A stretch of 64,000 nt of DNA from Obrimoposthia wandeli (taxonomy: Eukaryota): NCBI GenBank assembly GCA_977020255.1, contig CDROCS010000095.1:1-64000 (forward strand), read 5' to 3'. The number at the start of each line of letters is the position of its first letter. Position 1 is the stretch's first letter. This document shows, piece after piece, positions 8,915 through 43,698 of the stretch. A model generated the notes under the pieces. That model was not told the origin of the DNA. It made no database searches and saw nothing but the letters and a program-made list of their open reading frames with translations. A program made the translations under genes and the position numbers.

Positions 8915-9955
8915 ATGGCCAAACGTAGCAGAACAAAGTTGAGTAAGACTGAGCGTCAACAAGCTGAGCAACAACAAGCCGAGCAAAAGAAAGATCAAAT
9001 TGAATTGGGTGTTGGATCGCAACAAGACCATTTTACGGTGTTGTTACATGAAACCGTAGAGGGCTGTGTCGTTGACCCTGACGGTATTTATGTCGACGGT
9101 ACTTTTGGTCGTGGTGGCCATAGTGAACTGTTGCTAAGCAAGTTATCTGAACACGGCCGTTTATTCGGTATCGATAAAGATCCGCTAGCGATTGAAACCG
9201 GTAAAGCATTAGAGCTAAAAGATTCACGCTTCCAAATTATTAATGCCAGCTTTGCTGAGTTGCAAGAGCAACTGCAGGCGCGTGGTATTGAAAAAATTGA
9301 TGGTCTGTTATTGGACCTAGGGGTTTCTTCACCGCAACTAGATGATGCTGAACGCGGTTTTAGTTTTATGCGTGATGGCCCACTTGATATGCGTATGGAT
9401 CCTACTTCTGGAATTAGTGCGGAAGAATGGATTGCCAAAGTGAGTGCCGAAGAATTAGCACGGGTGATGAAGGAATATGGCGAAGAGCGATTTGCCAAGC
9501 GCATGGCCAATGCTGTTGTGCGTGAGCGTGAGTTGCAGCATATCAACCGTACTGTGCAGTTGGCTGAAATTTTAAAAGAAGCGAATCCAGCTTGGGAAAA
9601 ACATAAGCACCCAGCAACGCGTGCTTTCCAAGGTATTCGTATTCATCTTAATAACGAGTTAAGTGATTTAGAAAAGATTCTTGATCAATCAGTCGATGTA
9701 TTAAAAGTCGGCGGCCGTTTGGCTGTGATCAGTTTTCACTCGTTAGAAGATCGTATCGTAAAGCGTTTTATTCGTCGTCAAGAGCAAGGTCGTCCGATTC
9801 CAAGAGGATTGCCGATTCTTGATGATGATTTGGGTAAAACTATGAAGAAAATGAGTAAAGCCATTAAACCGAAAGCGAATGAGATTGGTGGCAACGTGCG
9901 TGCACGTAGTGCTGTTTTACGCATTGCTGAGCGTATTGAAGGCGAGCGAAACTAA
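8915..9955 (+). CDS. rsmH: 16S rRNA m4C1402 methyltransferase RsmH
   Basis: [45 protein letters not shown]. Confidence 0.97.
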
Positions 9956-9961
9956 TACGTG

Positions 9962-10240
9962 ATGATGCCAGCTGCCAAAAAAAATGCGTTGATTTTTTGC
10001 GCTTGGTTCTTAGTTATTGTATGCGCGACGTTACAGGTGTCGGCAACGCATTGGCATCGGCAGTTGGTTGCAGGTTGGCAAGTCTCTGAGCATCTGCGTT
10101 TGAGTTTAGAGCAAGACTACGGTCGCTTATTATTAGAACAAAGTGCGCTCACAGCTCATGGTCGAGTTGAGCGCATCGCAAAAGGCAAATTGAATATGAT
10201 TGAAGCGATGGATGTGCAGGTTATTCGCAGCAGTCGTTAG
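9962..10240 (+). CDS. ftsL: Cell division protein FtsL
   Basis: Single TM, then GRLLLEQSALTAHGRVERIA; lies between rsmH and ftsI. Confidence 0.9.
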   Translation: MMPAAKKNALIFCAWFLVIVCATLQVSATHWHRQLVAGWQVSEHLRLSLEQDYGRLLLEQSALTAHGRVERIAKGKLNMIEAMDVQVIRSSR

Positions 10241-10362
10241 TGCTACCAAAGCATCAAATGCAGGTAGAGCGATTAACTTCATGGATGGGGTTAACATAAT
10301 AATTATTAACGCATTAACGGAATGAGTTTGAGGAATATTTAAGATGAAAGGCACACGATAGC

Positions 10363-12099
10363 GTGGCTAATCCCCGTACTAAAAAAGCTGCAACCACAGC
10401 ATTAACAGAAACGGTTGAATATCGTATTCCAGTCTGGCGCTTTGTGCTAGTGCTGGGCGTATTCCTGTGCCTGTTAATTGTGGTCGCAGGTCGTATGGGT
10501 TATTTACATCTTGTGCAGCAATCTTTTTTAGCGGCTCAAGGTGAGCAGCGTATGGTGCGTGACGAATCGATTCCTGCGGTGCGTGGCGATATTAAAGATC
10601 GTCATGGTGAACCACTGGCTGTTAGCTCGCCGGTGAAAAGCTTGTGGTTAAATCCTAAGCTTTTCGATGTTGCCAATGTACCAAAGCTTGCGGCAAGTTT
10701 AGGCATGTCAGCGAATAAGCTGAGCCGTCGTTTAAAACGTAATCGCCAGCAAGGCTTTATGTATGTGCAGCGTCATTTACCTCCAGAGAAAGCCAATAAA
10801 GTATTAGCATTAAAACTGAGTGGCGTTTTTTCAGAAACTGAGTACCGTCGCTTTTATCCTGCGTCAGAAGTTACCTCACATGTGGTGGGTATGACCAATA
10901 TTGATGGTAAGGGCCAAGAGGGTTTAGAGCTGGCTTATGATGATTGGTTACAAGGTACGGCAGGACAGCAGCGCGTCGTAAAAGATTTGTTGGGCAATGT
11001 CATTAAACAGTTGAATGTCTCCGCGATTGCTAAGCCAGGTCATGAATTAAAGCTAACGTTGGATTTACGTTTGCAGTACTTAGCTTATCGTGAACTAAAG
11101 GCGGTCGTGCAAGCACATAAAGCGAATTGGGGCAGTGCTGTTTTATTGGACGCGAGTAATGGTGATATTTTAGCCTTGGTGAATCGTCCTTCTTATAATC
11201 CCAATAATCGCGCCACGCTAAATGCTAAAGATATGCGTAATCGGGCATTGACCGATATGGTTGAGCCAGGCTCAACCATGAAAGCCTTTACGGTTGCAGC
11301 AGCATTAAAACAAGGTAAATACAGCCCCAGCTCTATAATTGATACCTCTCCGGGTTATATGCGTATAAAGCAAAAAACCATTCGCGATCATAGGAATTAT
11401 GGTCGCTTAGATCTTACCGGCATTATTAGAAAATCGAGCAATATTGGCGTAACCAAGCTGGCTCATGAAATGGGTGCAGAATATTTATGGACCATGCTTC
11501 ATGATGCAAAATTAGGGCAGGCAACAGCGCTTGGTTTTCCTGGGGAAGCGGTTGGTAAATTACCTTATCCAGAAAAGCTCGATAAGCTCGGCTTAGCCAC
11601 GCTGTCTTTTGGTTATGGTTTGGCAGTCACACCCTTGCAATTAGCGCAAGCTTACACGGCTTTCGCTAATAAAGGCTGCGTGCAAGAAGCTCGTTTAATT
11701 ATTACCAATGCGCAAACACCTTGCGATCAAATTATGCCAGCGACTGTGGCAAAAAATCTAACCGAAATGCTAGAAACAGTGACGCAAAAAGGCGGCACAG
11801 GAACACGGGCTAAAGTCGCAGGTTATCGTGTAGGCGGAAAAACAGGTACGTCGCACAAAGTAGGTAAAGAAGGTTATCAGGATTCAGAATATACTGCAAT
11901 TTTTGCTGGTATAGCCCCTATTTCAGATCCACGATTTGTATTGGTTGTAGTAATTGATCAACCGAAAGGGCAAGAATATTATGGTGGTGAAGTAGCAGCC
12001 CCAGTATTTGCTCGAATTATGGAAGAGGCATTGCGTACTTTGCAAATCGCTCCTGATCAGAGTAAAGATTTTCATGTTGCGGAGATTTCTGCTTTATGA
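10363..12099 (+). CDS. ftsI: Peptidoglycan D,D-transpeptidase FtsI (PBP3)
   Basis: RGDIKDR, EPGSTMK (SxxK), SSN, KTGT motifs. Confidence 0.97.
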   Translation: MANPRTKKAATTALTETVEYRIPVWRFVLVLGVFLCLLIVVAGRMGYLHLVQQSFLAAQGEQRMVRDESIPAVRGDIKDRHGEPLAVSSPVKSLWLNPKLFDVANVPKLAASLGMSANKLSRRLKRNRQQGFMYVQRHLPPEKANKVLALKLSGVFSETEYRRFYPASEVTSHVVGMTNIDGKGQEGLELAYDDWLQGTAGQQRVVKDLLGNVIKQLNVSAIAKPGHELKLTLDLRLQYLAYRELKAVVQAHKANWGSAVLLDASNGDILALVNRPSYNPNNRATLNAKDMRNRALTDMVEPGSTMKAFTVAAALKQGKYSPSSIIDTSPGYMRIKQKTIRDHRNYGRLDLTGIIRKSSNIGVTKLAHEMGAEYLWTMLHDAKLGQATALGFPGEAVGKLPYPEKLDKLGLATLSFGYGLAVTPLQLAQAYTAFANKGCVQEARLIITNAQTPCDQIMPATVAKNLTEMLETVTQKGGTGTRAKVAGYRVGGKTGTSHKVGKEGYQDSEYTAIFAGIAPISDPRFVLVVVIDQPKGQEYYGGEVAAPVFARIMEEALRTLQIAPDQSKDFHVAEISAL

Positions 12100-34436: not shown

Positions 34437-35363
34437 TTAGGGTTGTACCATTCCAGGCATATACCATTCCATTATCTCATTACCCCACATTGCTGCAATC
34501 CAGCCAGCGGCTGCCAAATAAGGACCAAAAGGAATTGGGATGTTCTTATCACGGCCTAATATCATAATGCCCGCGATGCCAACAACTGCACCGACTAACG
34601 AGGATAATAAAATAATCATTGGTAAAAACTGCCAGCCAAACCAAGCACCTAATGCGGCTAATAGTTTGAAATCACCAAAGCCCATGCCGTCTTTACCGGT
34701 GGCGAGTTTAAATAACCAATAAACCGACCATAGCGATAAATACCCCGCCATTGCGCCAATAACCGCACTTTGAAGGTCAACAAAAGTATGATCAATATTC
34801 AGTAATAAACCCAGCCACATAAGTGACAGCGTCATAGTATCGGGCAAAATCTGATGATCGATATCGATCACACTCATTGTGACCAAAGACCAAGTAAATA
34901 CCAGCATAGCCGCTAATTGAATTGAAAAAGGGAATTTAATTAGTAGAGCCAAACTTAATAAGCCTGTCGCTAATTCCACCAATGGATAGCGGATAGATAT
35001 TTTAGTTTCTTTACCCTGTTCAGCGCAGCCAGAGCATCGGCCTTTTAATAGTACATAGCTAATGATAGGAATATTTTGCCAAGCTTTCACTGGGCTATGG
35101 CAACGCGGGCAATGAGAAGCAGGCTTGGAAAGTGTATAAGGCGACTCAAGGTTTTTGAGTGCACTGTGCTCGGGTAAGTTATCGGCTAAGTCTTTGCTAT
35201 CAATCAACCAGCTGCGAAATAGCATGATCGGATAGCGTAAAATCACCACGTTAAGAAAGCTGCCGATTAATAGTGATAAAATCAGAATAACGATAGGTAG
35301 AGCATAAGGTTGATGCTGTAGATAATAAGCAGCATCAGACAGTGAAACAAATTCAATAGCCAT
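34437..35363 (-). CDS. pilD: Type IV prepilin peptidase/N-methyltransferase
   Basis: GSFLNVVILR, CPRC..C..C, DIDHQILPD, GMGFGDFKL, PFGPYL. Confidence 0.96.
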   Translation of the reverse strand: MAIEFVSLSDAAYYLQHQPYALPIVILILSLLIGSFLNVVILRYPIMLFRSWLIDSKDLADNLPEHSALKNLESPYTLSKPASHCPRCHSPVKAWQNIPIISYVLLKGRCSGCAEQGKETKISIRYPLVELATGLLSLALLIKFPFSIQLAAMLVFTWSLVTMSVIDIDHQILPDTMTLSLMWLGLLLNIDHTFVDLQSAVIGAMAGYLSLWSVYWLFKLATGKDGMGFGDFKLLAALGAWFGWQFLPMIILLSSLVGAVVGIAGIMILGRDKNIPIPFGPYLAAAGWIAAMWGNEIMEWYMPGMVQP

Positions 35364-36592
35364 TACATTGCATTTCCCATCTCAAAGATTGGTAAGTACA
35401 TTGCGACAATAAGACCACCAATAACAACCCCTAAAAAAGACATTACTAAGGGTTCCATCATCGCAGTCAGTCCATCAACCGCATTGTCAACTTCATCTTC
35501 AAAGTAGTCTGCTGCTTTACTAAGCATACTGTCTAAAGCACCAGATTCTTCACCAATACTGGTCATCTGGACTACCATGTTTGGGAAAACCCCTGTAGCT
35601 TTCATTGCAAAGTGCATTTGCTGACCTTGGGATACTTCATCACGAACATTGAGTACTGCTTTTCGATAAACAGAATTACCCACTGCTCCAGCAACAGACT
35701 CAAGCGCTTCAACCAGTGGCACACCAGCGGCAAAGGTCGTGGCAAGTACTCTAGCAAAGCGTGCAACAGCTGCTTTCATAATCAAATCGCCAAAAATTGG
35801 AGCTTTTAGTAGGCCGGCTTCAAATTTATCTTTAAAAGCGGGTGATCGTGCTAATGCTTGTTTTAAGCCAACAACAAACCCCACAACAACAGCCACCATT
35901 ACCCACCAATACGCTTGAGTCCATTCAGAAATTGCTACCACCATTTTTGTCGGTGCAGGTAATTCAGAGCCAAAACTTTTGAACATAGATTCAAAGGTCG
36001 GAACAACTTTTACTAATAAAATAACGGTAACGATGGCTGCGATGGAGAGAGTAACCGCAGGGTACATCATTGCTTTTTTAATTTTCTTTTTTAAAGCTTC
36101 AGTTTTTTCTTTATAAATCGCTACTTTATCAAGCATCTCTTCTAAGGCACCAGACTGCTCGCCTGATTCAATTAAGTTGCAAAATAATTCATCAAAATGC
36201 TTTGGATGTTTTTTCAGAGCAGATGCAAAGTCATTACCAGCAGAAACATCATCACGGATCTGAGCAATTAGCTCTTTCATTGTCGGGTTATCAACACCAT
36301 CGCCTACAATATCGAAAGATTGAACAAGGGGTACACCGGCTTTCATCATTGTAGCCATTTGGCGTGTGAAAAAGCTTACATCAACCGGAGTTATCTTTTT
36401 AGATCCTCCAAAACTAAACATGGGCGTTGCTTTTTTCTTTTTTACTTTACCTGGCTGAATGCCCTGCTTACGCAGTTGAGCCTTAACAGTTGCTAAGTTA
36501 GCTCCAGAGATTTCTCCCTTGACCTTTTGCCCTTTACGATTAGTCCCTTCCCACTCAAAGCTTTGTAGTTTTTTCTGTGTATCTTTAGCCAT
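35363..36592 (-). CDS. pilC: Type IV pilus platform protein PilC
   Basis: FTRQMATMMKAGVPL, GEQSG, GEESG duplicated T2SSF domains. Confidence 0.96.
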   Translation of the reverse strand: MAKDTQKKLQSFEWEGTNRKGQKVKGEISGANLATVKAQLRKQGIQPGKVKKKKATPMFSFGGSKKITPVDVSFFTRQMATMMKAGVPLVQSFDIVGDGVDNPTMKELIAQIRDDVSAGNDFASALKKHPKHFDELFCNLIESGEQSGALEEMLDKVAIYKEKTEALKKKIKKAMMYPAVTLSIAAIVTVILLVKVVPTFESMFKSFGSELPAPTKMVVAISEWTQAYWWVMVAVVVGFVVGLKQALARSPAFKDKFEAGLLKAPIFGDLIMKAAVARFARVLATTFAAGVPLVEALESVAGAVGNSVYRKAVLNVRDEVSQGQQMHFAMKATGVFPNMVVQMTSIGEESGALDSMLSKAADYFEDEVDNAVDGLTAMMEPLVMSFLGVVIGGLIVAMYLPIFEMGNAM

Positions 36593-36634
36593 TTTTAAAT
36601 TCCGCTTTCTATTTCTATAAAGTCGCTAGGCGTA

Positions 36635-38320
36635 TCAATCTGCTGTGACTCGGTTGGCTTCTTCAAGGCTGGTAACACCTTGGGCGACTTTTTCTAATGC
36701 TGAGGTACGTAAGTTATTGAAGCCTTCTGCTTTTGCAACGGCTGCAATTTCTAGAGAATTGCCATCGTCCATAATGATTCTAGAGAGTGCTGGGGTGATT
36801 TTTACTACTTCGTAAATACCAACTCGCCCTTTATAACCTTTATTACAAGAGTCACAGCCTATCGGCTGGAAGAACGTGCCATTGGCTATAAGCTCTTCCG
36901 TTAAACCAGAATCTAATAATACCTGCTTTGGAATATCAGCAGGCTGTTTGCAAGCGCTGCATAAGCGTCGCCCTAAGCGCTGGGCAATAATAAGACTGAC
37001 CGAGGTCGCAATATTAAACGATGGTACGCCCATGTTTGCTAAGCGGGTTAGTGTTTCTGGTGCACTATTAGTGTGTAGTGTTGATAAAACCAAGTGACCG
37101 GTTTGTGCTGCTTTAATCGCAATAGAGGCGGTATCTAAATCTCGAATTTCCCCTACCATGATGATATCAGGGTCTTGTCGTAAGAAAGAGCGTAATGCTT
37201 CACCAAAATCTAAACCTACTTTGTGATTTACGTTTACCTGATTAATACCTTCAAGGTTAATTTCAACAGGATCTTCTGCTGTAGAAATATTCGTTTCTTC
37301 GGTATTAAGAATGTTCAAACCGGTATATAGCGATACTGTTTTACCTGAGCCAGTAGGGCCCGTGACAAGAATCATACCTTGAGGCTGAGCCAAGGCTTCC
37401 ATGTATAAAGCTTTTTGTTTTTCTTCGTACCCGAGCGCATCAATACCCATTTTGGCGCTAGAGGGATCAAGGATACGTAATACCAATTTCTCCCCCCATA
37501 ATGTGGGTAAGCTGTTTACACGAAAATCGATGGCTTTATTTTTAGATATTTTCATCTTGATACGACCATCTTGTGGTACGCGTCGTTCAGAGATGTCCAT
37601 CTGTGACATGACTTTTAAGCGTGCGGCTATCTTGCCTGAAAGGTTGACAGGGGGGCTGGACACTTCATGTAATACACCATCAGTACGGTAGCGCACGCGA
37701 TATCGCTTTTCATAGGGTTCAAAGTGAATATCAGAAGAGCCACTTTTTATGGCGTCGAGAAGCATTTTATTAACAAAGCGCACAATCGGGGCATCATCAC
37801 CTGTACCTGGTTCATCATTCTTATGCGCATCTTCAGGATTTTCAATGTCAACATCAAGATCTTCATCGTCAAAGTCGTCAAAAGCACTATCTTCAGCCGA
37901 AATGAATTTTTCTACCATCACTGCGAGCTTGTTTTCTTCAACAAGAACAGGCTCAATATTCATACCCGTATTGAACTTAATTTCATCAATAGCGGTGATA
38001 TTGGATGGGTCGCTTTGAGCTAAAAATAGACGGTTGCCACGTTTGAACAGTGGTAAAACTTTATGCTTTTCAATTAAGTCATTACTGACGATATCTTTAA
38101 CTAATAACTCAGTATCGAAGGCTGCAAGATCTAGTAATGGTAGACCAAATTCAGTAGAAGCAAAAAGAGCCACCTGTAAAGGATCAATAAAACCTTTGGC
38201 AACCGCGGTTGTTATAAACGATGATTTTTCATTTTTGGCAATTTCCATGGCTTGTTGAGCTTTATCAGCTTCAATAAGACCAGCTTGGTGTAAAGAACGG
38301 GCTAAACCATTTAGATTCAT
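36635..38320 (-). CDS. pilB: Type IV pilus assembly ATPase PilB
   Basis: SDIHFEP, GPTGSGKT, EDPVE, LRQDPD, GHLVLSTLH, four-Cys Zn motif. Confidence 0.97.
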   Translation of the reverse strand: MNLNGLARSLHQAGLIEADKAQQAMEIAKNEKSSFITTAVAKGFIDPLQVALFASTEFGLPLLDLAAFDTELLVKDIVSNDLIEKHKVLPLFKRGNRLFLAQSDPSNITAIDEIKFNTGMNIEPVLVEENKLAVMVEKFISAEDSAFDDFDDEDLDVDIENPEDAHKNDEPGTGDDAPIVRFVNKMLLDAIKSGSSDIHFEPYEKRYRVRYRTDGVLHEVSSPPVNLSGKIAARLKVMSQMDISERRVPQDGRIKMKISKNKAIDFRVNSLPTLWGEKLVLRILDPSSAKMGIDALGYEEKQKALYMEALAQPQGMILVTGPTGSGKTVSLYTGLNILNTEETNISTAEDPVEINLEGINQVNVNHKVGLDFGEALRSFLRQDPDIIMVGEIRDLDTASIAIKAAQTGHLVLSTLHTNSAPETLTRLANMGVPSFNIATSVSLIIAQRLGRRLCSACKQPADIPKQVLLDSGLTEELIANGTFFQPIGCDSCNKGYKGRVGIYEVVKITPALSRIIMDDGNSLEIAAVAKAEGFNNLRTSALEKVAQGVTSLEEANRVTAD

Positions 38321-38467: not shown

Positions 38468-38491
38468 AAAAAAGGCCCCGGAGGGCCTTTT
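38468..38491 (-). terminator. Rho-independent terminator after pilA
   Basis: AAAAGGCCC-CGGA-GGGCCTTTT; a T run follows on the minus strand. Confidence 0.85.
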
Positions 38492-38511: not shown

Positions 38512-39012
38512 TTAGCTACCGTTTACGTTACGAATTAGATAAGTCTTAATAAGAGCAACAGTATTCGCATCGTCGTCAGATCCAGTACCCGAGAACTTAC
38601 TAGTCCAAGTTGTTACAGCGCCACCAAAGGTAGGCGTTAGAATAATATTTGGAGTACCAACACCCGCACCTGCAACAGCTTCTGCTAATTGTAGGGTAAT
38701 TACGCCGTCAGCAGAAACAGAGATTTGAGCAACTTCCTCAATAGCAGCAACATCAGGTCTACGCATGCCAATTGATTGCCATGACGTATCTGTACCACTA
38801 GACGCGGTAAATGCAGTAGGGAAAGTGCCGCCTTCGTTATTAGTAATAGTTAAAGCTGTTTTAATATTGCTAACGCTAGCCAAAGCTGTCGCAACTTTAG
38901 TACGTACAATGTAATCACGGTACATTGGGATTGATACAGAAGCTAGAATACCGATAATCGCAACAACGATCATCAATTCAATTAGGGTGAAACCACTTTG
39001 TTGTTTTTGCAT
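38512..39012 (-). CDS. pilA: Type IVa major pilin (166 aa precursor)
   Basis: MQKQQSG|[17 protein letters not shown] class III signal with E5; adjacent to pilBCD. Confidence 0.95.
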
Positions 39013-39084
39013 GGACTGCTCCAAAAGTTCTTTTTTATGAATGAGCTTTCTAAAGGATCGCTCTGTCGTTTGTATTTTACATCT

Positions 39085-39100
39085 TGCAGGTAGCATGCCA
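39085..39100 (-). promoter_or_regulatory. sigma54 (-24/-12) promoter of pilA
   Basis: Minus-strand TGGCATGCTACCTGCA: GG and GC separated by exactly 10 nt. Confidence 0.8.
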
Positions 39101-39218
39101 AATAATTATATACCGGCTCAAATCCTTCAAGGTTAGCCTAGAGCATACAGCGCTGGCTTTTTTTCGTCTAGCAGTGCGAAGGAGTTTCTGCTTAAAGACG
39201 GGAATAGTGTGAACTAGG

Positions 39219-39233
39219 TGACAAAAATTGTCA
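39219..39233. promoter_or_regulatory. Candidate upstream activator site (PilR-type enhancer)
   Basis: Perfect inverted repeat TGACA-AAAAT-TGTCA about 120-130 bp upstream of the -24 box. Confidence 0.5.
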
Positions 39234-39246
39234 GATGTTGGCAATT

Positions 39247-41118
39247 TTATGGGATGTTTAGACCTTTTTTGAACTCTAGGCTTTTTTTATGAGAATTTGC
39301 GGTTGAGTCTTTCCAGTTAAATTCTATTAACGATTCTTTTTTCTGTGTGATTAGTGTATTTCCATTCCACCACGAATATTCCTTTTGGCTTACAAGCTCG
39401 GTATAAATTTCATGCTTGATCACGACTTTACCTTGCGGAGTGATCCTATAGGCATGAGCCGCTTGTTTAAAAATATCAGCTTCATTTAATTGTGAGTGTT
39501 TAACTGCACTGACATTATAGCCAGTTTCAAAGCTAAGCCATTGTCGAGTGGGCTCATGGTCTGAAAATAAATCGATGCCATCAAAGTCTGGGTGACTTAA
39601 AGGGGAGATTGAGAGCAGTTCAAGTAAAGTCGGTGCTATATCGATAAGTGATGCTAGTTGCGAGTCATCTTGTGCTATCAGTTTTGGATGCTGGATGCCT
39701 AGTACAACATGATGTTGGCTTATTTGTTTTGCGCTGGTGCCATGCCCAAAGCCCGTTAAAGTTTCTTTTTTACCACTTTCCCAAGTGAAAACTTTTTTAT
39801 CAGAAGGCAGAGTTTCGCCATGATCAGACATTATAATTTGAGTTGATAAGTCATTAATGATTCCCATGCTTTTCAAAGCTTTGTATACAGCGGCTACTTG
39901 TTTATCGGCCATTGCTACGGTATTCGCATAGGCTTCTTCGCTTGTATCTGTGTCAATGGAGTTGCGCCAACTGAAAGGATGGTGGGGTAGGCAAAAGTGA
40001 AAAGCTAAAAATAAGGGTTTATTACCAATATTTTCTTTTTGAAGACTTACTTTGTTAATCAAATAGTCGCTAAACTTTTCGGGATCATAAGTTGTGGGGG
40101 AAGCGCGATTTAGTGTTGAATAAGGAAGAATATATTCAGCGGCGGGCAATAAGGTCGCTAAATTCAATAGAGGGATATCAGAAAATGTTCCTAGAATAAA
40201 ATCTGCTAAACCGTAGGGCGGCCCAAATACTTGATCAAAGCCTAATTCAGAGGTTATGTTAGCAAACCGTTTTTCATCACTGGCATATACCGTGTAGTAG
40301 TTATTGTCTTGTAAGGTATGAGCGAGGGTTTTTATTCCTTTAAATCGCACAGGATCGGTTAAGTTAAATTCTGCTTTATGATGTGTCGGCTGTTGTCCTG
40401 TTAATACAGACATCCATGCCGGAAAGGTACGGGCTAACGGAGTATAAGCTTGAGTGAAATTATAGCTGGTTTTTAATTGCTTACTTATGAACGGCGCTAT
40501 GCTTTTTTGAGGTTGCGATGAATTTGTAATGTCGGGTCTTAAAGAATCGACACTGAAAATGATGATATTTTTATTTTTCTTAAAACCGGTATTATTAACA
40601 GTGGATAGGTAATGGATAGTTCCAAGGAATAAGGTGAAAATACTAATAGAGGCTATTGATAGTAGCTTGGTTTTACTGATAGATATGGAATGTATTTTCT
40701 TAAAATCCAAGATGGGAACTAATACTATGAGTGAAAATAAATAAACCATGTCATTAGAAAGGTCGCTATTTAACGAGAATGTTGAATGTGGAAATAAGAT
40801 AGTATTACTAATAATGGCTATGAAAAAAAGAAAACTAATAAAGAGTAGTTTGGATAGTGCAGGTCTTAGGTTGGATGAGTGTTTTATATACTGATGCAGT
40901 TTCAATACAATGCATAGGAATAATGTATGTATAAATAGAGTGATAACAAAAAATTGTAATAGCTCTATAGAAAAATAGCTGCTCAATGCTTCCTCATAGT
41001 TTAAAGAAGAAAATACCTTCTTATCGTTAAATAGTAATGCGAATTTTGCCGTTAAAAATATGACTTGAACACCTATAAGGAGAAGTGCGTAAATAAAAGA
41101 ATGTATCACTAAGGTCAT
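39247..41118 (-). CDS. Membrane-anchored alkaline-phosphatase/sulfatase-superfamily hydrolase/transferase (623 aa)
   Basis: About 5 N-terminal TM segments, then SVDSLRPD, ARTFPAWMSVLTG, SDHGE, GHG and SLIDIAPTLLELL; ATG overlaps the upstream stop (ATGA). Confidence 0.85.
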   Translation of the reverse strand: MTLVIHSFIYALLLIGVQVIFLTAKFALLFNDKKVFSSLNYEEALSSYFSIELLQFFVITLFIHTLFLCIVLKLHQYIKHSSNLRPALSKLLFISFLFFIAIISNTILFPHSTFSLNSDLSNDMVYLFSLIVLVPILDFKKIHSISISKTKLLSIASISIFTLFLGTIHYLSTVNNTGFKKNKNIIIFSVDSLRPDITNSSQPQKSIAPFISKQLKTSYNFTQAYTPLARTFPAWMSVLTGQQPTHHKAEFNLTDPVRFKGIKTLAHTLQDNNYYTVYASDEKRFANITSELGFDQVFGPPYGLADFILGTFSDIPLLNLATLLPAAEYILPYSTLNRASPTTYDPEKFSDYLINKVSLQKENIGNKPLFLAFHFCLPHHPFSWRNSIDTDTSEEAYANTVAMADKQVAAVYKALKSMGIINDLSTQIIMSDHGETLPSDKKVFTWESGKKETLTGFGHGTSAKQISQHHVVLGIQHPKLIAQDDSQLASLIDIAPTLLELLSISPLSHPDFDGIDLFSDHEPTRQWLSFETGYNVSAVKHSQLNEADIFKQAAHAYRITPQGKVVIKHEIYTELVSQKEYSWWNGNTLITQKKESLIEFNWKDSTANSHKKSLEFKKGLNIP

Positions 41119-42566
41119 TTGCAATATGTCTTGAGCAGAGTGATGTCTGGGTTAGAATGCCTAGAATAGAACCAACATTTTGTACTTGATCTAGTTAGGG
41201 CTAATTCAATAAGGTGATCCCTTGTAGTTGCGTCTTTTTCGGGTATCCAGTTTTCAGGCGAAAAATACAATGGGTATTTTGCATTCCATTCTATCCAGCC
41301 ATCACTCATTGAGTCGTTTTTAGAATTGGCAACTTGAGAAGAAAATATTACATAAACAATCAAAGCTATAGCGGAAAGTAACAATGCTGTTTTTAATCGA
41401 GGCTCTATTTTTTTGTTTGTTGGAGGGATACACACTGCTAATAATATAAGAACTATGAATAAACCAAAGGCGTGATATAGCACTCCGTCTGTAAGGGCGT
41501 GAGTTGCGGCTGAAATAATGCAGAGAAATACGAGTGAGTTTTGTCTGTTCTCTAGCGTAAGCTGTCTGATAGATAGTTGGGCGATCAAGCCTAATGGAAT
41601 TATTAAACCAATAATTCCGTATGAGAAAATTAACTGTATGATAATGCTGTGGGGTTGAGAAATTCCAGAAATGCTGGGCATTATGTAGCGGAATGCATCT
41701 GCTCCAGCACCGAGGATAGGTGCATTGCTCCACCAGTAGTTAATTGAATCTTGATAGATTTTTAATCTATTGGCGGATATTTGATTTAAGTCAATGTCAT
41801 TTCCAGGATTAAACCAAGCTAAAAGATGAAATAAATTTAAACCGCCAGATTGTACAATGAAAAATTGTGAGAGTACTGCCCCTATTAGTATTGAAAGCAG
41901 TACCCACTTTATGTTCTTCGTAGAGATAATCATGTAAATGAGAGTGGCGACGATAACCCCAAGTAGTGCGCCGCGGCCTCCTGACCAGAAAATTAAGCCC
42001 CAAGCTAATGAAAGATAAAATATGGCAAATAGGCGTTTATTTTTTTTATTACTGTCTAATAACCAATAGCCTAAAGGAAGCGCTGTTGCGATAAAATAAC
42101 CATAGTGACGAATGTTATTAACAAAGGGGGAGCTTGGTACCCAGCTATAGGTATAAGGGTCTTCTAAAGCAATCCATAGACCTATGTAGCAGGTAAGAGA
42201 GAATAATAATGCAGCGATAATGCTGTGTAGAACGAGATTTTTATATTGTGGCGATTGTTGTATTAACAAATAAATAAAAAGTCCAAAAATAAAACTTATT
42301 AATAGTTCAAACCAGCGAATTATTCCAGCCCAAGGATATTCTCCGAGGACGGTAGATAGGCCTGCCCATAATAGCCATATTATGATTAATGAGGTATAGC
42401 GGCGAGAAATATTCCATTGCTTTAAGTTTACGATGCTAAGAGTTGCAAGTGCAATAAAACCGAGTTCAAGAAATACTGTAATTGCTCGTAGCAACAGAGG
42501 GCCAAAATGCGGTAAAAGACTCTCGTAACAATAAAAAATGCTATCGGAGAGCATGCTAAAAAACAA
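41115..42566 (-). CDS. O-antigen ligase/O-oligosaccharyltransferase (Wzy_C, WaaL/TfpO-like) (483 aa)
   Basis: About 12 hydrophobic segments, SGGRGALLG, NRLKIYQDSINYW..PILGAGADAF..QPHSIIIQL..YGIIG. Confidence 0.85.
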   Translation of the reverse strand: MFFSMLSDSIFYCYESLLPHFGPLLLRAITVFLELGFIALATLSIVNLKQWNISRRYTSLIIIWLLWAGLSTVLGEYPWAGIIRWFELLISFIFGLFIYLLIQQSPQYKNLVLHSIIAALLFSLTCYIGLWIALEDPYTYSWVPSSPFVNNIRHYGYFIATALPLGYWLLDSNKKNKRLFAIFYLSLAWGLIFWSGGRGALLGVIVATLIYMIISTKNIKWVLLSILIGAVLSQFFIVQSGGLNLFHLLAWFNPGNDIDLNQISANRLKIYQDSINYWWSNAPILGAGADAFRYIMPSISGISQPHSIIIQLIFSYGIIGLIIPLGLIAQLSIRQLTLENRQNSLVFLCIISAATHALTDGVLYHAFGLFIVLILLAVCIPPTNKKIEPRLKTALLLSAIALIVYVIFSSQVANSKNDSMSDGWIEWNAKYPLYFSPENWIPEKDATTRDHLIELALTRSSTKCWFYSRHSNPDITLLKTYCK

Positions 42567-42637: not shown

Positions 42638-43543
42638 TTAAACCAACCGCATAGACAAATCAACCGCAGTGCAGTCTTTAGTCAAAGCCCCAATAGAAAT
42701 ATAATCCACTCCAGTCTCAGCATAAGCGCGTAACGTTTTGGTAGTAATACCACCAGAAGCTTCAAGCTTCGCGTGCTTTCCAATACCAGAAGCATTCTTT
42801 GCGTTAGCAAACGTCTTATTCAATTCAACTGCTTCAACCATCAAGGCAGGGCTAAAGTTATCCAGCATGATAATGTCGGCACCGGCTTTAAGCGCTGTGG
42901 TTAGTTCTGCTAGCGATTCGACTTCGACTTCTACTTTCTTGCCCGGTGCAATTAGGTGAGCTTTTTCTACCGCATTTTTGATACTGCCACAGGCGTGGAT
43001 GTGGTTTTCTTTAATCAAAAACGCATCGTATAAGCCTAGGCGATGGTTGTAGCAGCCACCAATACTAACAGCGTATTTTTGACCTATGCGTAAGCCCGGC
43101 AAGGTTTTGCGGGTATCGAGTAATTTAACCCCCGTCCCTTCTACTATTTGTGCGTAATGCTGGCACAAGGTGGCAGTTGCCGATAATGTTTGTAGAAAAT
43201 TCAAGGCGGCGCGTTCTCCCGTTAATAGCGATCGGGCAGAGCCTGTGAGTTCGAACAAAACTTGATTTGGGCGTACCCATTGGCCATCGCTGACTTTCCA
43301 GTTAATACAAACGCTGGGGTCGAGTTGTTTGAATACTTCATTTACCCAAGCTGAACCGGCGATGATGGCGCGGTCGCGGCTGATAATCCGGGCCTTTGCT
43401 TGATTTTCTGCAGGTATCAGTTGCGCGGTAATATCACCGTTTATGAGCAGATTTCCCGAGGCATCAGTGCCTATATCTTCTAATAACGCTTGTTTAACGG
43501 TATTGCGGATATCGTCTTTAAAGGGGGTTAAATCAAGCGGCAT
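42638..43543 (-). CDS. nadC: Quinolinate phosphoribosyltransferase (nicotinate-nucleotide diphosphorylase)
   Basis: [47 protein letters not shown]. Confidence 0.97.
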
Positions 43544-43698
43544 GGTTTGCTGTCTCGTGAATCTGTTTGATAGGGTTTTCTTAGCTAGAAATTTTGAGCG
43601 AGTATTGATGTCAGCGTCGCTCAATCCTTTCTAGCTTCAGATGTCTTTGTTTCTTTTTCGGCTAGTTTTTACACTAGCCTTTTTAAAACTTCTTAAAT

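Follow-up and report, generated by a model that had tools for sequence, protein, structure and literature searches.

Type IV pili serve as adhesins, as organelles of motility and as major phage receptors, and the chemistry of their surface decides what binds to them; the described pilin accessory genes encode glycosyltransferases (TfpO, TfpW, TfpM and PglS) or helpers (TfpX, TfpY and TfpZ). Decoration of a pilin with phospho-forms is, to our knowledge, known essentially from Neisseria, where PglL, a general oligosaccharyltransferase of 550-600 residues that uses internal sequons, and PptA, a member of the EptA family, are encoded by genes linked neither to pilE nor to each other. The Neisseria pilin carries a glycan together with phosphoethanolamine or phosphocholine (PptA) or phosphoglycerol (PptB) (PMC10948894), and TfpO and TfpM glycosylate the C-terminal Ser or Thr of the adjacent pilin (PMC9829042). 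Here we analyze a stretch of 64,000 nucleotides (contig CDROCS010000095.1, positions 1 to 64,000, from an assembly filed under Obrimoposthia wandeli; hereafter the window), in which two genes between nadC and the major pilin gene pilA encode a membrane protein with the O-antigen-ligase fold, Wzy_C, and a membrane-anchored enzyme of the alkaline phosphatase (AP) superfamily with a sulfatase fold. The window comes from a marine bacterium, and its nearest genome match is a metagenome-assembled genome (MAG) of Oleispira, with 53% identity in the AP protein. We find that both genes are very probably pilus accessory genes, and we favor, on balance, a mechanism in which two transferases act directly on the pilin, one a TfpO-like O-oligosaccharyltransferase and the other a new phospho-form transferase unrelated to PptA, a reading drawn from sequence, structural models and analogy.

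The open reading frames (ORFs) of this region all run on the minus strand, in the order sodium:alanine symporter, nadC, Wzy_C, AP, pilA, pilB, pilC and pilD. The Wzy_C gene (41115-42566, minus strand; Pfam Wzy_C, 1.7e-15) encodes a protein of 483 residues, a candidate pilin O-oligosaccharyltransferase, and is followed by the AP gene (ORF 39247-41124, with an ATG at 41118, minus strand; Pfam Sulfatase, 9e-20, plus Phosphodiest), whose product of 623 residues, five transmembrane (TM) helices and a periplasmic AP domain, is a candidate phospho-form transferase. The two genes share an ATGA stop/start overlap at 41115-41118 on the same strand, read directly in the sequence as TGC AAA TGA / ATG ACC. 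A preliminary description of this locus had reported two AT-richer genes, co-oriented with pilA, inserted between nadC and pilA and translationally coupled by this overlap, one of them Wzy_C/WaaL-like and the other a five-TM AP-superfamily enzyme. We recover the position, the strand, the overlap and, with the profile matches and models given below, both assignments, as well as the AT-richness, the G+C content of the two genes being 36.2% and 37.6% versus 42.5% for the whole window; the G+C content at third codon positions is 32-34% in both, however, the same as in pilB and pilC. A recent horizontal transfer is therefore rejected as the reason for the low G+C content, which reflects the amino-acid content of hydrophobic membrane proteins and not obviously a foreign origin.

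The linkage to pilin genes extends far beyond this locus. A relative of the AP protein is encoded in 363 of 185,579 species genomes, and a word search returned 942 homologous proteins. Of the 77 loci that were fetched, 24 have a type IV pilin gene no more than 700 bp from the AP gene, and 11 have a Wzy_C gene no more than 300 bp from it; by family, the commonest neighbors are pilins (28 loci), PilB (13), Wzy_C (10), PilC (9) and PilR-type sigma-54 activators (6), the remainder being housekeeping genes specific to the lineage. Pilin neighbors occur at 28-53% AP identity in Gamma- and Betaproteobacteria, and AP homologs of Desulfobulbia adjoin a Wzy_C gene, with pilin-like genes ~5 kb off in one locus. 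A FastTree phylogeny of the AP proteins, the deep branches of which are weak, was used for the distribution of contexts alone, and shows that context labels are clustered (0 of 200 shuffles as low). Outside a Coxiellaceae-like clade of 35 rows, which is mostly unlinked to pilin or Wzy_C genes, the AP gene abuts a pilin and/or Wzy_C gene in 33 of 45 tree rows, and some of the other rows are contig-end truncations within the nadC-pilA slot (L020, L063).

The junction of the AP and Wzy_C genes is tight, from an 11-bp overlap to a 40-bp gap, in 11 related loci and in either order. The Oleispira MAG (L013) has the order of the window, Wzy_C, AP, pilA, with a pilin that ends in VNGGGS, and in Zooshikella, as in Pseudomonas sp. 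L-22-4S-12 and a Burkholderiaceae MAG, the order is pilA, AP, Wzy_C; in a Desulfobacterium MAG the pair lies beside a cluster of minor-pilin and PilY1 genes. The preliminary description would have been contradicted had homologous pairs not been linked to pilA in other genomes, which is clearly not the case, as the linkage recurs across bacterial classes, in both gene orders; its claim that the pair belongs functionally with the pilin is thus strongly supported by conserved synteny. Because both genes recur beside pilin genes in distantly related bacteria, the pair most likely decorates the pilus. An AP gene alone beside pilA is also common, e.g., in Thiobacillus, Allochromatium, Povalibacter, Sedimenticola and Nevskiaceae, with at least 16 loci in which AP is directly beside pilA and no Wzy_C gene is nearby. 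Each enzyme thus occurs alone beside pilA (for Wzy_C, see below), which makes them separable modules and an obligate two-enzyme complex unlikely.

The gap between nadC and pilA is a variable accessory-gene slot in an Oceanospirillaceae-type lineage, since relatives carry different accessory genes there. A word-based search returned 20 Wzy_C homologs at 28-82% identity, and all those with readable context (40-82% identity) lie between nadC, or ampD, and pilA, the homologs in nadC-slot relatives being 40-44% identical to the protein of the window. Two marine metagenome contigs, L001 and L005, have the order nadC, Wzy_C, a protein of 214-220 residues, pilA and pilBCD, with no AP gene; a third contig, L003, has nadC, Wzy_C, AP, a protein of 233 residues and pilA, and a fourth has ampD, Wzy_C, AP and pilA. 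nadC borders the slot likewise in L001, L003, L005, L013, L020 and L063. The proteins of 214-233 residues (L001:9514-10158, L005:9518-10180 and L003:11373-12074), encoded between the Wzy_C or AP gene and pilA, are 58-63% identical to one another and have three TM segments and a soluble part, with no Pfam match. They fit the published description of TfpY (PMC11841053) and are called TfpY-like on a match to that description only; in close relatives they occupy the variable slot beside pilA that holds the AP gene here. Accessory proteins of the TfpY/TfpZ/TfpX kind are non-enzymatic assembly helpers, unlike the enzymes at issue, and the 64 kb window contains no TfpY-like protein of 214-233 residues. 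A related three-TM protein is encoded downstream of AP in a Nevskiaceae MAG (L066:10007-10801).

The Wzy_C protein is, by its alignment and model, an intact WaaL-fold ligase of TfpO-like size. Four residues, R153, R198, R267 and H306, do not vary across 24 aligned homologs, some of them distant and drawn from AP-linked loci. The profile of these homologs matches the cryo-EM structure of WaaL from Cupriavidus metallidurans (PDB 7tpg) at 2e-16, with a PHN motif aligned on the AHN of WaaL and H306 on its catalytic His; a match to a 610-residue "oligosaccharyltransferase" (9rmk) is weak (E 0.005), and no protein named as an oligosaccharyltransferase came up when the profile was used in a word-based search. 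An AlphaFold2 (AF2) model (predicted local distance difference test, pLDDT, 85.5) returns WaaL alone from the PDB with Foldseek (E 1.7e-5). The protein thus has the fold and the conserved Arg and His residues of WaaL, from which it differs in an additional C-terminal segment of ~90 residues and in a conserved gene placement, next to nadC in the pilA accessory slot and not in a lipopolysaccharide (LPS) core cluster. With TfpO/PilO of Pseudomonas aeruginosa 1244 and Acinetobacter, and with TfpM, it has in common the Wzy_C domain and the conserved catalytic His, a similar size (483 residues here, 420-470 there), a gene that belongs to a pilA cassette, and a cognate pilin with Ser as its last residue (PMC9829042). 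It is unlike them in that their genes lie immediately downstream of the pilin gene, whereas the gene here is upstream of pilA and separated from it by the AP gene; the protein also has a second enzyme as its partner, and its nearest solved relative is WaaL. Neither PglL_A nor Wzy_C_2 has a Pfam match in the protein at E<0.01, Wzy_C being its sole domain, which sets it apart from the general oligosaccharyltransferases PglL/PglO, with their 550-600 residues and PglL_A and Wzy_C_2 regions.

The AP protein is modeled by AF2 (pLDDT 84, predicted template modeling score, pTM, 0.85) with five long N-terminal TM helices (residues 2-171), an AP-superfamily domain and a small beta-rich C-terminal part (~530-620), and the catalytic domain is predicted, from the positive charges of loops 2 and 4, to be periplasmic. 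Among 25 homologs, 27-76% identical to the protein of the window, D191, T231, H374, H379, D432 and H433 are invariant. In pairwise alignments, T231 falls on the formylglycine Cys of S1 sulfatases (ARTFPAW versus FCGPSR), and the protein lacks the Cys/Ser-x-Pro-x-Arg formylglycine motif, with T-F-P-A-W in its stead, of which the Thr is invariant among the 25 homologs and the Trp is found in at least 90%. Since Thr, and not Cys or Ser, stands at the nucleophile position, we reject a true, formylglycine-dependent sulfatase, and the enzyme is more likely a phosphoryl transferase than a sulfatase. Membership in the PptA/EptA family is likewise rejected, because no EptA_B_N domain was found: the Thr nucleophile is there, but EptA_B_N gives no Pfam match and the Ept models give no NCBIfam match. 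The label "phosphoform-type transferase" of the preliminary description therefore holds in part; it fits the invariant Thr nucleophile and the five-TM anchor, but not the family that it brings to mind.

In profile comparisons to the PDB, the AP domain matches S1 sulfatases at 1e-24, LtaS at 7.6e-11 and LtaP at 1.5e-10, while by structure S1 sulfatases (Z 31), the periplasmic domain of YejM/PbgA (Z 30) and LtaS/LtaP (Z 28-29) come out practically equal as its neighbors. The protein has every feature of the LtaS-like architecture class: its AP domain is extracytoplasmic and follows five TM helices, with Thr as the nucleophile and Asp/His as metal ligands. LtaS, EptA/MCR, OpgB, BcsG and PbgA (YejM) likewise combine a multi-TM N-terminal anchor with an AP fold in the periplasm, a nucleophilic Thr and a metal site of Asp and His. 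The AP protein differs from these in matching none of their family hidden Markov models, in its extra beta-rich C-terminal part and in its genomic partner, a pilin gene. We class it, on its predicted features, as a family of its own with the architecture and nucleophile of membrane-anchored head-group transferases such as LtaS, EptA, OpgB and BcsG.

The tails of the adjacent pilins suggest where such enzymes could act. The prepilin of the window has the leader MQKQQSG, a mature protein that begins FTLIELM, and a C-terminal end, NVNGS, with the terminal Ser that had been reported for it. Of 27 distinct pilins encoded next to AP or Wzy_C genes, 18 have Ser or Thr as the last residue, a raw count, uncorrected for phylogeny, and not an enrichment. 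Among 11 pilins beside related Wzy_C genes, 8 have such an end, and beyond the last Cys many pilins of AP-only loci have a Gly/Ser tail (ECRTTGGS, RGGAGGGS, SCRTGFGS, PGGGSGGS, RSGFGGAS). These tails hint at a C-terminal acceptor site, as in TfpO and TfpM, and we take them as a suggestive lead. The major pilin of the window has no cysteine at all, and thus no C-terminal disulfide loop of the kind usual in type IVa pilins.

With this gene order, these domains, catalytic residues and folds, and the pilin linkage in hand, we infer donors, an acceptor site and a biological role as follows. The two genes would form a cassette for post-translational modification of the pilin in the variable nadC-pilA slot, and both enzymes would act at the periplasmic face of the inner membrane, where processed pilin awaits assembly. 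The Wzy_C ligase, TfpO/PilO-like, would transfer an oligosaccharide linked to undecaprenyl pyrophosphate onto the pilin, probably at its C-terminal Ser, and the AP enzyme would take the head group of a phospholipid (phosphoethanolamine or phosphoglycerol), carry it as phospho-Thr231 and hand it on to a hydroxyl of the pilin or, with lower likelihood, to the glycan. The resulting variation of the surface may serve, e.g., to evade pilus-specific phages or predators. The closest functional precedent is the double decoration of the Neisseria pilin by a Wzy_C-family ligase, PglL/PglO, and AP-superfamily membrane transferases, PptA/PptB (PMC10948894, PMC11130364), from which this locus differs in an AP enzyme that lacks EptA_B_N and is nearest in sequence to S1 sulfatases. 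In its genetics the locus is analogous to the pilA-tfpO or pilA-tfpM cassette (PMC9829042), to which it adds a second enzyme and, in this lineage, an upstream position.

A number of observations weigh against direct action of two such transferases on the pilin. The AP domain is nearer in sequence to the hydrolytic S1 sulfatases (1e-24) than to LtaS (~1e-10), and neither EptA nor MCR is among its 60 top-ranking profile matches in the PDB. Roughly half of the AP homologs that were fetched, those of the Coxiellaceae-like clade, are surrounded by housekeeping genes. Several pilins adjacent to the pair end in neither Ser nor Thr, among them that of Zooshikella (…KICD) and those of L034 (…PKLK) and L082 (…SPKI). 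The nearest profile match of the Wzy_C protein is a true WaaL, and the PglL-specific Pfam domains were not found in it; its likeness to TfpO is one of domain, size, context in a pilA cassette and a Ser-ending pilin.

The alternative that survives best keeps the pilus as the target but moves the second step, in that the AP enzyme would decorate, with a phospho-substituent on a sugar, the glycan put on the pilin by the Wzy_C ligase or by a general PglL encoded elsewhere in the genome. The translational coupling of the two genes in 11 loci, in either order, suggests one pathway and so speaks for it, and Campylobacter EptC adds a phospho-substituent to N-glycans. Sugars are also accepted elsewhere by head-group transferases of the AP superfamily, as in the action of BcsG on cellulose (bioRxiv 10.64898/2026.09.23.753746). 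The AP genes directly beside pilA with no Wzy_C gene nearby, in at least 16 loci, argue against a glycan as the acceptor, however, as do the close Wzy_C relatives without an AP gene in L001 and L005, which show the enzymes to be separable, and we consider decoration of the glycan rather unlikely.

Lower still stands the proposal that the pair serves LPS or another envelope glycolipid, with the Wzy_C protein as the WaaL of the cell, the AP protein as a transferase of phospho-substituents to lipid A or core, and the adjacency to pilA incidental. WaaL as the best match of solved structure, the missing PglL_A and Wzy_C_2 domains and the lack of another Wzy_C gene in the window would all agree with this. 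Yet the pilin adjacency recurs in different gene orders and bacterial classes, with surroundings that otherwise differ, close relatives have a TfpY-like gene for a pilin accessory protein where the AP gene would stand in that slot, and no LPS core genes are nearby, so that we hold an LPS role to be very improbable. Equally doubtful is an AP protein that is a hydrolase or other non-transferase, be it a phosphodiesterase that trims or takes off a modification or a PbgA/YejM-like lipid-binding factor in the handling of pilin in the membrane, since the nearness in sequence to hydrolases (S1 sulfatases, phosphonate monoester hydrolases) and the YejM/PbgA periplasmic domain among the top structural neighbors (Z 30) are set against the lack of a Cys/Ser-x-P-x-R formylglycine motif, metal and nucleophile sites too fully conserved for a purely structural role, and a membrane-anchored architecture that matches head-group transferases.

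Returning to direct modification of the pilin by two transferases, we next consider what is new in it. The Wzy_C gene belongs to a known type; what is new is the pilA-linked sulfatase-fold family and its coupling to a ligase. In the open-access literature we came upon no account of pilin cassettes with a sulfatase-like gene, and the TfpY paper does not contain the word "sulfatase"; the family thus appears to be undescribed in a pilin role. The preliminary description had known of no locus with the upstream arrangement and a coupled second enzyme; the upstream arrangement is specific to a lineage, a trait of the Oceanospirillaceae type in the loci compared, and in other lineages the enzyme genes are downstream of pilA. 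Tentatively, and as a possibility that we would not yet bet on, the AP enzyme may found a widespread new class of pilin phospho-form transferases, independent in origin of Neisseria PptA and encoded in the pilA cassettes of hundreds of species of Proteobacteria. Such enzymes would act on pilins that end in Ser, often with a Gly/Ser tail, either alone or with a TfpO-like ligase, which together would yield pili with two decorations. If this were true, pilin chemistry would gain a new type through a pilA-linked, sulfatase-derived transferase present in no fewer than 363 species. The transferase would also account for the Gly/Ser-tailed pilins and provide a simple genomic marker with which to predict modified pili in environmental Gamma- and Betaproteobacteria. 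The cassette is compact, consisting of two genes and the pilin.

The two enzyme genes are predicted to be a translationally coupled transcription unit separate from pilA. pilA itself, encoding a type IVa major pilin (ORF 38512-39096, likeliest start ATG 39012, minus strand; Pfam N_methyl, 7e-10, and Pilin, 2e-5), is preceded by a sigma-54-type -24/-12 element, TGGCATGCTACCTGCA (39085-39100, minus strand), a candidate pilA promoter identified by pattern match and positional conservation. This element lies between the AP gene and pilA and is the sole sigma-54-type match in the window, and a chance control gave at least one such match in 37 of 100 shuffles; of 24 related loci, 14 carry a like element ~85-95 bp ahead of pilA. 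The assignment is supported because the position before pilA is conserved, and not because of the single match, and pilA is predicted to be driven by its own strong, conserved sigma-54-type promoter. Since the element intervenes between the AP gene and pilA, a single operon that includes pilA is rejected in favor of a separate two-gene unit, and the "operon upstream of pilA" of the preliminary description gives way to a less simple arrangement. Low-level, coupled translation of the enzymes beside a sigma-54-driven pilA would set the ratio of catalytic to structural protein. For cassettes with downstream accessory genes, a terminator after pilA has been proposed to set this catalytic-to-structural stoichiometry (PMC11841053).

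The window has an intrinsic terminator 3' of pilA (38470-38491, minus strand), a 9-bp GC-rich stem followed by a T run. Downstream and co-oriented with pilA are pilB, pilC and pilD (34437-38320, minus strand), for the assembly ATPase, the platform protein and the prepilin peptidase; pilB (36635-38320) is identified by Pfam T2SSE and MshEN, and pilC and pilD are assigned from ORF order and synteny with L001. On the other side of the enzyme genes lies nadC, which encodes quinolinate phosphoribosyltransferase (ORF 42638-43624, likely start 43540, minus strand; Pfam QRPTase_N and QRPTase_C).

Some of the related loci have further features of their own. Paralogous AP copies, in tandem or divergent, are found at L020:5944-9785, L040:5662-10070, L068:5605-9998 and L060:7638-11773; Bermanella has two sulfatase-fold genes in tandem after nadC, Povalibacter has a divergent pair of them beside a pilin that ends in GFGS, and in one locus of this set a sulfatase-fold gene is apparently in pieces. 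A gammaproteobacterial MAG (L019:7068-15454) has pilA, AP and Wzy_C and, 3 kb farther along and downstream of a PilR-type regulator, another Wzy_C gene. In the Coxiellaceae-like clade (L016, L023, L032, L035, L047 and L052, at ~9500-11700), the AP gene is often near a divergent small pilin-like gene, usually within ~750 bp, whose product has an unusual N-terminus (…GVTLLEVMLVLA) and may be a pilin or a pseudopilin.

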